Assembly: GCA_043228905.1 (NCBI GenBank)
Contig: JBHGNT010000018.1
Coordinates: 17,608,001-17,672,000, forward strand
Reading direction: 5' to 3'
Length of the DNA: 64,000 bases
Source: Azolla caroliniana
Lineage: Eukaryota > Plantae > Polypodiophyta
Shown here: positions 13,285 to 57,655 of the stretch, one piece after another
Position numbering within the stretch: position 1 is the first letter of the stretch
How the letters are laid out: each line of letters starts with the position of its first letter
The notes under the pieces: model-generated
Database searches by the model: none
What the model was told of the DNA's origin: nothing
The model's input: the letters and a program-made list of their open reading frames with translations, nothing else
Made by a program: the position numbers and the translations under genes

Positions 13285-13569
13285 CTACTCCTCGATCGGT
13301 GACCGATCGACCACAATCTTGCCATTCTTGACACCGATATAAATGTCGGGAGAGATGTCGATCCTAGGGGTTCTAGATCCATTCACTATGATGACGATGC
13401 CGAGTTCCATCCACGAGTCCGAGTTCGGGAGCTTGATTCTCGTGCTAGACCTAGGGGCGATGCCTGTGTCTTGGCCATGGAAATTCTGCGTGTTGCCGAG
13501 GCACTTCACCTCTAGGGTGCAATGGAAATCGGAATCATTGTGTATGTTCACGGTTTGGCTATTCCCCAT
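13285..13569 (-). CDS. Small (94 aa) single-exon beta-rich protein of unknown function with N-myristoylation-type start (copy P1)
   Basis: Intact ORF ~72% aa identical to 57368-57655, shared 3' flank, CpG retained, MGNSQT fits MGxxx[S/T]. Confidence 0.85.
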   Translation of the reverse strand: MGNSQTVNIHNDSDFHCTLEVKCLGNTQNFHGQDTGIAPRSSTRIKLPNSDSWMELGIVIIVNGSRTPRIDISPDIYIGVKNGKIVVDRSPIEE

Positions 13570-13574
13570 GACCG

Positions 13575-13835
13575 TTTGCCGGTTCGGTTCGGTTCGGTCG
13601 GTTTAGCCTTGAGCTACCTTAACTCAGAACTGGTTTGATCTCGGTTTGGGATGTTGGCTCAACCCGACCAAACTGATTTGGCCCAAATTGGTTAAAGGCT
13701 TAATTGGCTTGGCTAAACTGGTTCGTAAAGGGGTTAAGGGTAACTGGTTTGGGCCCCGGTTCGGTTCAAGCTTAGAAATTCCCAAACCGGTTAAGGCTTA
13801 ACCGATTTCGTTTCTTGAAGTAAAACTGTTTAAAC
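13575..13835 (+). mobile_element. Decayed hAT-like MITE immediately upstream of P1
   Basis: cggtttagccttgagctaccttaac matches 3380-3405; many AACCG/CGGTT motifs; absent upstream of paralog P2. Confidence 0.55.
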
Positions 13836-14594
13836 ACGAAAGAAGACAGAAATTGATTGATCTCTCAAAAATAGAGGCGGATCCATACCTGATGATGGCT
13901 CAAGAAAACATGGGATTTTGTTGAAGGCTGGATGTGAAAGAGAAGGAGAGATGTGTTCTTTTTGCTGTGTTTTTGAAGTGTTAAATCTCTTAAGTTTTTC
14001 CACATGTTTTAGGAAGGTATTGCACCTACATCTTCCAAAACACTGTGGACCTACATGTATGTATATGAGGAAACGTGTCTGTCCCACACAGAGCACACAC
14101 GCTTTTGCAAACAGACCCAAGTTTCCATGGCCTACCTTCTTCTCTGTTGCCATCGTCTTTATCCCTCTCTCTAAACTAATATTTTTCTGTGGCCATGGAT
14201 AGATATGGGAAGAGAAGTCCAAATGGCTGATGATGATGATGATGGGTCCGACCATGGATTCTTCTTCAGATCCTCACTGGTTGGTCTCTGTCTCCCTGTC
14301 TGTGTCTCTCTGGGCTTTCTCTTTCTCTTGTCTGATTCACTAACACTTTTAAATTTTAAGCAAAACCGAATTTTTGTTTATTGTCGCGATGCCCCTAGGA
14401 TTTGCTTTATTTCCACAAAAATGCCCCTCTCTATATATCTCTCTCTCTCTCTCTCTACCTACCTATTTATCTATCTATTTACCACTAGGGTAAGTTGTTC
14501 AGACTATTACCCCCCTACGTCTTGGGTTCGAAACCTAATTTTTTCTACCTCTCTCCCTTTTGATCTCATAGATCATATTTGACCTTCTAACACA

Positions 14595-14651
<57 letters not shown>

Positions 14652-15188
14652 AAAACACACACACGATTATATTAGATTGGGCATAAATCTGCCCTTACAA
14701 CTTCTTCGCATTTCACGTGTTATTTGCATGTAATGCAAGAAACAATCCCCCACGTGTTCCAATCAAATGAAAATAGAGTAAGCATTTTTTCTTTAGAGAA
14801 CACACTTCAATTTTTGACTTTTTTTTATAGAATCTTGCAAGTATGCAACATTTCGCATAGTGTTGAAAGTATATTGTCTCTTTCTTGTATGTATGTATGT
14901 ATGTATGTATGTATGTATGTATGTATGTACGTACGTATCCATACGTAGATATGTTAGGGTTTATATAGAATGTGTTGTCTCCTCCATTGTGTGTGAGATT
15001 ACTAATATCTTTGACATTTTCAACACGCTCATCTTGCCTATTCCAATACATGAAAGAGAGGGAGTGCATTATTGTTTTCATAATGGCACGACTAATTATA
15101 TAAGGCAAAAATTATATTGTGAAAATTGTTCAAGAAAATCAACCAAACACTCTACAAAAATTATGCACGACACACACAAAATGTTTAT

Positions 15189-55154: not shown

Positions 55155-55219
55155 CAAGGATACTCTTTTGAGGACTAAAGGCTTCTCGGAAATTTTGGAA
55201 AGAACTTTCTAGAATCCAT

Positions 55220-56460
55220 AGGTATCTTCTGCTCTATATGTATGTATGCTTGCATGTTATGTTATGTTATATTATGTATTATGTATGTATGTATATATCT
55301 ATTGTTATGTATGGTATGGTATGTATGTATGTTATATTATGTTATGTATGTTAGGCATGTATGTATGTATATTATGTATGGTAGGGTGTTATGTCCTTCG
55401 TTGTGTGGGTATGTATGTGACTAAATAGTATCTTTGACCTTTTCAACATGTTTATTTTGCTTTTATAACTCGAATATACACGAAAGCAAGGAGTTAGTGC
55501 ACGTAGTCTTGAGAATAATTTACTTTGTAATGATTTATTGCATATGCCTATATCATATGTGTCTGTCTGTATGTTTGTATAGTATTTATAGTATGTATGT
55601 ATGTATGTATGTATGTATGTATGTATGTATGGTATGAATGAAGGTATGGATGTGTATGGTCTAAATGCATATATGTCCATGTGTGTGTGTCATGAATAAT
55701 GTCTGACTACATGTCCATGTCTAGATCTAATCTATATATGTTTTATGTTTTGCCGAACTTGATTCCTATATGTGTTCTACTCACATCCAAATTAACTCAA
55801 CATAACGTTACTTTAGGTTAGGTTATGTTATGTTATGTCCTTCATTGAGTGTGTGTGCATCACTAAATAGTATCTTTGACATTTTCAACATGCTTATTTT
55901 GTTTTTTTCACTTGAATATACATGAAAGCCACGGAGGGAGTTCACATTAATGTAAAGAGTATACAAGATTTCAAAGTCTATGTGATCGGGGGAGTGCCAC
56001 TACGGAATGCCATTCTTGGAGGTCATGAATGGAGTAGTTTTAGCATCGGCATCTCCAATTTTACCGTCCCATTGACTCTTCAAAGTATGAACTTGTCCAA
56101 CCAAATATTTGTAACCAATTTTGCTGGTGTTGCTAAGAACTATGTCCACATATGATAAGCAACTCATGGCATCGAGCAATTTTAACATCAGCATCTCCAA
56201 ATATATTGTCCCTTTAAACCTTCAAAATATGAACTATGTCCAACCAAATATTTATAACCAATTCCGCTGATGTTGCTTTAACTTGATTGAAAATAATTTA
56301 CTTTGTAACGATTTATTATCATATGTATGTATGCATGTATGCCTACATATATAGATTATGTATACATGTATGTCCATGTCTACATAATCTATATATATAT
56401 GTTTTGTGTTCTGCCTAACCTGATTCCTATCTGTGTTCTACTCAGATCTGAATTTAACTC
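55220..56460. repeat. (TATG)n-rich dispersed repeat, tandemly duplicated; third copy at ~14885-15070
   Basis: ctaaatagtatctttgac.ttttcaacatg at 55421 and 55863, related sequence at 15001; internal duplication 56040-56135 / 56180-56280. Confidence 0.7.
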
Positions 56461-56629
56461 CACAATTAAAGTAATTTCATAGACTTAAGCAATCAATTAC
56501 TTCTTCCATTAGGGATTGATCCGTTCATCCCGTCTTTCTCCATCCATTCCATCCCTTCATCATCCATTCATTTACTTCTTCTTCTTCTTCTTCTTCTAGG
56601 ATTCATCCATTCATCCATCCATTTCATCC

Positions 56630-56876
56630 TCATCCCTTGATGAACATCCGCTCCCCCAAGTCTCAGACCACAGATTTGATGTCGATAACAGAGTGGCTAC
56701 GAGTCGGACACAGCTTCTCACCAAAATCAAATCATATGATTTCTATTACAACATGACTAGGTGAAAAATCCATGGCAAGAACAAATGATTTCCCAAATGG
56801 ACACGGCCAATCTGCATGCTATCGGCGATGATTCACTACTAATTGCAAGGGCTATGGTTGTTGGGCTGTTGCCCAT
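56630..56876 (-). pseudogene. Probable relic of the small beta-protein family (copy R3), starts MGNSPT
   Basis: 39-codon ORF 56876-56757 MGNSPTTIALAISSESSPIACRLAVSIWEIICSCHGFFT*; C-x-L-x-V and HG in exact register with P1/P2. Confidence 0.55.
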
Positions 56877-57367
56877 TAGAATCGACAGCAATGGGACAGA
56901 TTTATGAGAGCTGTAGGTCTTCTATTTTTGGGGGTAGAGTGAGAGTGAGAAATGAAGAGGAAACCTTAGATAAACAGAGAAGGTACCCACCATTTACCAC
57001 ATAAGACCATATATGTATTTATGTACATGAATGCATTTCAAATTGTGTCTAATTCTTCTCACTTCTATAATCTTTTGGTAGATAATGTTTGTGGAGCACC
57101 AAGGACTACTGCTGCTGCTAAATCTTATGTAAAGTTAGATTGGCTGTTAAGTCAAATCAGCATAGCATCCCTTGGAAAAACCTATAAAACCAGTTACCTT
57201 GTAAATTGAAGCAAAAGCTTTAAGTCTAATAGGATAAAGACCATTGGAAAGCTGGCCCTAACCAAAGAGAAGGAAGACAATTACATGAAAAACCCTTACC
57301 CCCCTCCTATACCTATTTACTTAGGGCTGTGGCCTTCAGAGTGGGGGCCATATGGAATGCAATCTGT

Positions 57368-57655
57368 CTACTCCACCTCGATCGGTGACCGATCGACCAC
57401 AACCTCGCCATTCCTGATACCAATATAAATGTCGGGAGAGATTTCGATCCTACGCATTCTCGATCCATTCACAACGATGATGATGCTGAGTACTTCGCGT
57501 GCATCCGAGGCCGGGAGCTTGATTGTCGTGCTAGATCTCGGGGCAATGCCCATGTTTTGGCCATGGAGAATCTGTGTGTTGCTGCGGCAGTTCACCTCTA
57601 GGGTGCAATGGAAATGGGAGGCATTGTGTATGTTCACGGTTTGGGAATTCCCCAT
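57368..57655 (-). CDS. Small (95 aa) single-exon beta-rich protein of unknown function with N-myristoylation-type start (copy P2)
   Basis: Intact paralog of 13285-13569; TATA-like element upstream. Confidence 0.85.
   Translation of the reverse strand: MGNSQTVNIHNASHFHCTLEVNCRSNTQILHGQNMGIAPRSSTTIKLPASDAREVLSIIIVVNGSRMRRIEISPDIYIGIRNGEVVVDRSPIEVE

Follow-up and report, generated by a model that had tools for sequence, protein, structure and literature searches.

A 64,000-nucleotide (nt) stretch of the Azolla caroliniana genome (assembly GCA_043228905.1, contig JBHGNT010000018.1, positions 17,608,001 to 17,672,000, forward strand; the whole stretch is called the window below) carries three small intact open reading frames (ORFs), which we named P1, P2 and P3. 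We found that these ORFs belong to a real, unnamed, low-copy and lineage-restricted family of small all-beta proteins, the paralogues of which, at least 15 in number, fall into three subfamilies (A, B and C). The family is protein-coding and under moderate purifying selection, and its members are neither chance ORFs nor transposon pieces. With moderate confidence, we interpret P1 to P3 as members of a lineage-restricted, unnamed family of duplicating single-exon genes, which is maintained by purifying selection and encodes predicted beta-sandwich proteins of presumably cytosolic location with a putative binding role. The A-type proteins would additionally carry a lipid anchor.

Three related open reading frames in the window

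When the coordinates of P1 and P2 (Table 1) are read on the plus strand, stop codons are hit, but translation of the minus strand is intact over 94 and 95 codons, respectively. P3 is encoded by the plus strand. A preceding reading of the DNA, made from the sequence alone and called the sequence-only reading here, had described three intact single-exon ORFs without stating the strands, and our translations bear out this description. P1 and P2 have the N-terminus MGNSQTVNIHN in common and their proteins are 73% identical over 94-95 residues, which agrees with the 26 differences in 94 positions counted before. The identity of P3 with P1 and P2 is lower (36-39%; 39% with P1 in the alignment). As described before, P3 keeps the motifs IHN, C..E, P.S, LP, NGSR and NG..VVDR, and the MG start is absent.

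In a tblastn comparison of the three proteins with the whole window, P3 was matched by P2 with an E-value of 1e-9 and by P1 with an E-value of 3e-7. No further family copies were detected in the window and the next best match had an E-value of 0.087. Since only P1 to P3 match each other in this window-wide comparison, the three-member family is real and the window holds no further copies.

On the DNA level, the likeness of P1 and P2 sets in about 8 nt ahead of the ATG and ends about 51-55 nt past the stop codon, with 85% identity in the coding sequence (CDS) and 86% in the 3' flank. The shared 3' flank of the sequence-only reading exists, although it spans only 51 nt (86% identity). The variable patch at residues 49-57 is also real, with the sequence NSDSWMELG in P1 and ASDAREVLS in P2, where it arises from 9 base changes within 12 bases (codons 60-63).

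Members of the family

An exhaustive profile search with a hidden Markov model (HMM) covered 1.84 billion protein representatives. It yielded only three real clusters (A, B = P0004, C = P0005), all of which come from ENA metagenome contigs. A fourth match, a 3769-residue bacterial YadA repeat protein with eight short matching stretches, is regarded as spurious, and apart from it no longer protein containing this domain was found among the representatives. When P1 was used in a word-indexed search, three proteins of 95-99 residues were obtained (83-87% identical), again all from ENA metagenome contigs; the identity of P1 with the A-type proteins of metagenomes amounts to 82-88%. Repeating the word search with a broader alignment yielded six further B-type proteins, and the word searches together contributed seven. 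Scanning of JGI metagenome records gave one more A locus and two more C loci. No relative was found in 185,579 prokaryote genomes. The cluster protein P0005 is in truth an 89-codon ORF starting MNRRHRQTVTIHN, the deposited call of which ran through stops. The deposited gene calls of the ENA contigs L005 and L017 fail standard-code translation; stops are read through and an 89-residue ORF is inflated to 222 residues.

After removal of duplicates, 15 distinct intact ORFs of 84-99 residues were retained. Subfamily A starts with MGNSQTV and has six members (P1, P2, L001, L002, L003, L006). Eight members (P3, L004, L009, L015-L019) start with M[TAS]M..TIHN and constitute subfamily B. Subfamily C, which starts with MNRRHRQTV, is represented by L005; L007 and L008 encode the same protein and their DNA is 95-100% identical. 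P3 had previously been considered a soluble variant of the MG type. This view does not hold, since P3, the closest relative of which is L009, sits in the larger subfamily B with its 8 distinct members.

The contigs of the relatives have a coverage of 1.3-2.3x, which indicates a low copy number. Some of them are about 99% identical to non-coding DNA of the window (L006 upstream of P1; L002, with 99.7%, downstream of P2). Because of this near-identity, the same or a very close plant must be present in the corresponding samples, and most contigs represent paralogues from its genome. Taken together, these data confirm the unnamed family that the sequence-only reading had anticipated, with relatives only in metagenome contigs. 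Birth-and-death evolution had also been suggested. It is plausible that copies arose by local duplication and then diverged (three copies in 44 kb, 15 paralogues, near-neutral P2), but a role in defence or recognition is without any pointer.

Selection on the coding sequences

All 15 distinct copies are intact. Their start and stop positions are conserved, in-frame stops are located upstream and all length differences are multiples of three. The ratio of non-synonymous to synonymous substitution rates (omega) was estimated with a codon model (GY+F3X4 in IQ-TREE) and a likelihood ratio test (LRT) against omega = 1, and pairwise values were calculated according to Nei-Gojobori. For all 15 copies, we obtained an omega of 0.42 (LRT p 1.7e-10). 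The corresponding values were 0.42 for set A (LRT p 2.5e-4) and 0.49 for set B (LRT p 6e-4). Pairwise values of 0.19 (L001-L003), 0.23 (P1-L003), 0.28 (L009-L015) and 0.33 (P3-L009) were determined. Because omega is about 0.42 and a ratio of 1 is rejected, the family consists of protein-coding genes and not of chance ORFs.

For the comparison of P2 with the other A copies, the pairwise omega was 0.88-0.92. In P2, 27 substitutions are private (19.5 non-synonymous, 7.5 synonymous), which corresponds to an omega of about 0.76 (p 0.65 versus neutral), and thus this copy is probably relaxed or decaying. P1 has few private changes, with an omega of about 0.63.

N-terminal sequences and predicted fold

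Substrates of N-myristoyltransferase are described by the PROSITE pattern PS00008 (G-{EDRKHPFYW}-x(2)-[STAGCN]-{P}), which applies to Gly2 after removal of the methionine. The pattern is matched by the MGNSQTV start of P1, P2 and the four other A-type copies and by none of the nine B and C copies, including P3. The N-myristoylation-type start that had been proposed for the family is invariant in subfamily A, but it is absent from the other two subfamilies. Ser4 is encoded by TCC in P2 and by AGC in the other A copies, and this residue has therefore been retained through a multi-step codon change. In the A-type proteins, the start would be N-myristoylated co-translationally and might provide a weak or switchable lipid anchor, which B and C would lack.

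No hydrophobic N-terminus, signal peptide or membrane-span-like segment was found in any of the 15 proteins, as had been expected for the signal peptide. The first 15 residues are hydrophilic (Kyte-Doolittle -0.9 for the A-type) and strand 1 begins at residue 5. Since a signal peptide is lacking, the family members are presumably cytosolic, stand-alone proteins of 84-99 residues. The isoelectric points are acidic to neutral for the A-type (5.2-6.9) and basic for six of the eight B-type proteins (8.5-8.8); P3 (6.2) and L017 (6.4) have lower values. The B-type genes start with variable runs of ATG-ACC, ATG-GCC or ATG-TCC (window 49056-49067; L004, L009, L016-L019), which are translated to MTMT, MAMAMT, MSMSMT or MTMTMTMT. 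Such a run behaves like a microsatellite inside the coding sequence and provides more than one potential start codon.

Structure models were calculated with AlphaFold2 from small family alignments. P1 was modeled as an all-beta protein with seven strands (pLDDT 76, pTM 0.67). For P3, eight strands were obtained (pLDDT 85.5, pTM 0.74) and all five models agree. The P1 and P3 models show one and the same beta-sandwich with the same top structural neighbours, so that a single fold of 7-8 strands is predicted for both proteins. Both models support the small all-beta protein family of the sequence-only reading. AlgF, TssJ/IglE, the VHL beta domain and domain 4 of cytolysins were listed as structural neighbours. 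According to the calibration of the tool itself, these values correspond to a common sandwich arrangement and not to kinship. Foldseek gave no match in the PDB at E <= 0.001 and its weaker matches (cytolysin domain 4, TssJ, AlgF, PepT) are generic folds. A profile search of the PDB chain sequences returned nothing below an E-value of 0.6, and the Atlas structure search listed only unnamed bacterial sandwiches and Ig_halo.

Eight polar residues (H10, N11, E20, R24, N26, Q28, S41 and R66 in P1 numbering) are invariant. Via these residues, the proteins might function as small binding or adaptor modules and not as enzymes.

Possible transcripts

For expression data, we used runs with the same species label, the kind of which was given as "RNA?" (a guess). 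For the P3 stretch, two runs were listed, which contained next to none of the P3 words. Contigs of the runs were aligned to the window between 56400 and 58700 at a likeness of at least 80%. Here, a single 400-nt contig of run X1 spans the entire P2 CDS at about 85% identity, and because of this value it derives from a paralogue. The 5' half of the P2 CDS is covered by up to six contigs. A 297-nt X1 contig (3 differences, 99% identical) aligns to window positions 56772-57168 on the plus strand and skips 99 nt at 56981-57079. The skip ends AAG/GTAC...TTGGTAG/A on the plus strand (slashes mark its borders), which corresponds to a canonical intron. Thus, a spliced transcript probably runs convergently with P2, inside the block that was duplicated with the A-type genes. 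The ORFs around this contig gave no Pfam match. In view of the spliced skip, and with a longest contig of only 6.4 kb, X1 seems to be RNA; if so, A-type paralogues are transcribed. The sequence-only reading had regarded P1 to P3 as the only apparent host genes of the region. This was roughly right, except for the spliced plus-strand transcript that probably adjoins P2.

About 600 nt upstream of P2 (window 58248-58700), the depth of X1 contigs reaches 50-100, which indicates a high-copy or highly expressed repeat.

Evaluation of the interpretation

Several observations weigh against the interpretation of P1 to P3 as maintained genes of a lineage-restricted family with lipid-anchored A-type members. 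The branch of P2 is indistinguishable from neutral evolution and the private changes of P1 are few (omega 0.63), so that the window copies may be losing function. None of the runs is proven to be RNA, and for P1, P2 and P3 themselves a matching contig could not be shown. The N-terminus of the A-type proteins has neither a polybasic patch nor a nearby cysteine and thus no second membrane signal, and a lone myristate would hold a membrane only weakly. In addition, every relative comes from low-coverage assemblies, which are possibly chimeric. Finally, small single-exon genes often escape annotation, and absence from the protein sets of other plants is therefore weak evidence of restriction.

The first of these points leads to an alternative that we consider possible but rather unlikely. 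The window copies, above all P2, could be young pseudogenes that are open by chance, so that the TE-filled cluster would be a graveyard of copies, with functional members of the family perhaps located in other parts of the genome. The near-neutral omega of the P2 branch and of its comparisons with the other A copies fits this alternative, as do the scramble of 9 in 12 bases in codons 60-63 and the lack of exactly matching contigs for all three ORFs. Moreover, the CT-rich upstream block that P1 has in common with L001 was not found upstream of P2, and the promoter-proximal region of P1 holds an AACCG-rich insert. However, the ORFs of P1, P2 and P3 are all intact, and the omega of 0.33 for P3 versus L009, together with a P3 CDS that is better kept than its flanks (see below), speaks against it. 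P2 retains the entire MGNSQTV start including the synonymous switch of the serine codon, and with 27 substitutions staying open under neutrality is only modestly likely (rough estimate ~0.3).

Comparison with known protein families

Pfam scans of all members gave nothing above threshold. Sub-threshold matches were obtained for Cep192_D6 (at best 18.6 bits versus a cut-off of 35, in 4 of the 15 members), PapD_C (~13 bits), LacZ_4 and DUF7748. PapD-like or MSP-like Ig folds, to which Cep192_D6 and PapD_C belong, were rejected as they stay below the Pfam cut-off.

DUF7748 (PF24928, an uncharacterised plant-wide domain of about 92 residues) provides the only lead at the level of families, and it is conceivable but doubtful that the family is a very diverged branch of this domain and not an orphan. 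In a language-model feature search, the DUF7748 cluster ranks first for the C-type protein (0.91, 174/256 features) and at rank 10 for P1 (0.87); such feature scores are leads only. In hmmscan, residues 8-50 of the C-type protein align with DUF7748 positions 2-44 (E 0.036, 14.6 bits), and the domain length (92 positions) and the taxon (Streptophyta) fit. In contrast, this match is restricted to 1 of the 15 members and its 14.6 bits are below the Pfam cut-off of 25 bits. No DUF7748 protein appeared in the exhaustive profile search (E <= 0.001) or in the word search (E <= 10), and the Atlas structure search did not list DUF7748. Moreover, DUF7748 proteins are longer (~130 residues). In the literature, we found no paper on DUF7748 or on fern orphan or myristoylated small proteins of this kind.

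Flanking sequences and possible gene conversion

Table 1. Positions of P1 to P3 and of their flanking features in the window
Feature	Position	Strand	Properties
P1	13285..13569	-	A-type gene, 94 residues plus stop, starts MGNSQTV; intact ORF
P1 3' conserved flank, probably 3' untranslated region (UTR)	13226..13284	-	Aligns to L001, L002 and L006 at 88-95% and to P2 at 86%; likeness stops beyond
P1 upstream region	13570..13970	-	AACCG-rich insert beside the ATG, then CT-rich block (13807-13939) in common with L001
P3 locus with conserved flanks (paralogous or orthologous locus)	48902..49950	+	L009-L014 align over 0.8-1.1 kb at 81-83%
P3	49056..49310	+	B-type gene, 84 residues plus stop, starts MTMTIHN; intact ORF
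Downstream block accompanying A-type genes (P2, L001, L002)	56362..57299	-	99.7% to L002 over ~400 nt; 89% to L001 over ~900 nt
P2 3' flank in common with P1	57317..57367	-	86% over 51 nt
P2	57368..57655	-	A-type gene, 95 residues plus stop, most diverged A copy; intact ORF
P2 leader and (CATCTC)n microsatellite before the ATG	57656..57805	-	Aligns to L001 and L002 at ~79%

The upstream region of P1 is a putative promoter or 5' UTR. L006 matches it at 99% identity for about 400 nt, and its CT-rich block is 82% identical to L001 57-199. From Table 1, it can be seen that a downstream block is conserved beside the A-type genes, and this finding shows a segmental duplication larger than the ORF. 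The family would have spread by local and segmental duplication. For the P3 locus, a match of L013 that consists mostly of CDS is about 91% identical, and since the flanks reach only about 81-83%, the P3 CDS is better preserved than its flanks.

Most A-type copies carry a (CATCTC)n microsatellite of variable length 60-150 nt before the ATG (window 57675-57814; L001, L002). In P1, the AACCG-rich insert (13570-13800) stands at this place.

Two contigs have mosaic identities. L006 (1-800) is 99% identical to the P1 locus (window 13226-13970) up to CDS base 53; beyond this base it is about 10% diverged from P1 and 97% like L002. In L002, the downstream flank of P2 is 99.7% identical (compared with window 56900-57805) and the CDS is 13% diverged. 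These identities reflect gene conversion among paralogues or, alternatively, contigs that were assembled as chimeras at low coverage. Positive selection was rejected as the source of the discordance between CDS and flanks (L006/P1, L002/P2): many of the CDS differences are synonymous and far above the flank divergence, and therefore conversion or chimeric assembly fits better. An extended interpretation, in which one branch of the lineage-restricted beta-sandwich family gained a myristoyl anchor and the paralogues swap coding segments by gene conversion, appears improbable to us. If it were true, the exchange of coding segments could yield mosaic variants like those of gene clusters for recognition or defence.

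Transposon surroundings

The window is rich in transposons, with Copia and Gypsy pol fragments and three pairs of long terminal repeats (LTRs; 3.4/9.6 kb, 32.2/35.2 kb and 38.2/42.8 kb). We consider it very improbable that the ORFs represent part of a transposable element (TE), a captured gene fragment or an exon of a larger known gene. Such an origin might be suspected because P1 to P3 lie between retrotransposons, the DNA likeness of P1 and P2 is only about 350 nt long and P2 and L002 are both followed by about 400 nt of near-identical DNA. However, none of the LTR pairs of the window brackets P1, P2 or P3, and no copy is enclosed by terminal inverted repeats; inverted matches close to the genes are restricted to microsatellites and short local hairpins that do not bracket any gene. 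No TE protein domain was detected in the family proteins by the Pfam scan. Among the searched representatives, the only long match to the domain was the spurious YadA protein, and contig coverage and the number of distinct copies point to a low copy number. Conserved start and stop positions and upstream in-frame stops in all 15 copies argue in the same direction, and the flanks are conserved as at ordinary loci.

Discussion

The closest known systems differ from the family described here. TssJ and IglE, two bacterial lipid-anchored small beta-sandwich adaptors, provide an analogy and not a membership, as there is no sequence similarity. They are lipoproteins that act in the periplasm and possess a signal peptide as well as a lipobox cysteine. 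The extracellular beta-sandwich domains of PepT1/PepT2 and the lumenal domain of HGSNAT were also listed among the closest known systems. SPH proteins (PF05938; structure 6g7g) are likewise small plant all-beta proteins in multigene families, but they are secreted and match PF05938, and the structural similarity of the family to SPH appears to be at background level, with SPH seemingly not special among the neighbours. The resemblance to SPH/Self-incomp_S1 or to bacterial IPD072-like insecticidal beta-proteins that had been seen in the sequence is hardly tenable as an explanation, since none of the 15 members matched PF05938 even at an E-value of 10, a signal peptide is lacking in the family proteins and no related bacterial protein (E <= 0.001, except for the spurious YadA) or genome stretch was detected, IPD072 itself not having been compared.

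A defence system is not demonstrated by these data, with an omega of 0.42 overall, and nothing points to the defence or recognition role that had been proposed for the family. Our preferred interpretation remains that of a lineage-restricted family of putative small binding or adaptor proteins, the A-type members of which may be attached to membranes. Plants frequently contain orphan families with common folds, and the value of the present finding is modest: it serves as a catalogue entry and as a lead. It adds an unnamed, selectively maintained family to the lineage-restricted plant genes. Its members are small and intron-less, lie among transposons and are located outside the searched protein sets, and annotation pipelines tend to overlook such genes. 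The apparent gain of a lipid-anchor motif in one subfamily provides a simple, testable case of a small soluble domain that might acquire membrane targeting.

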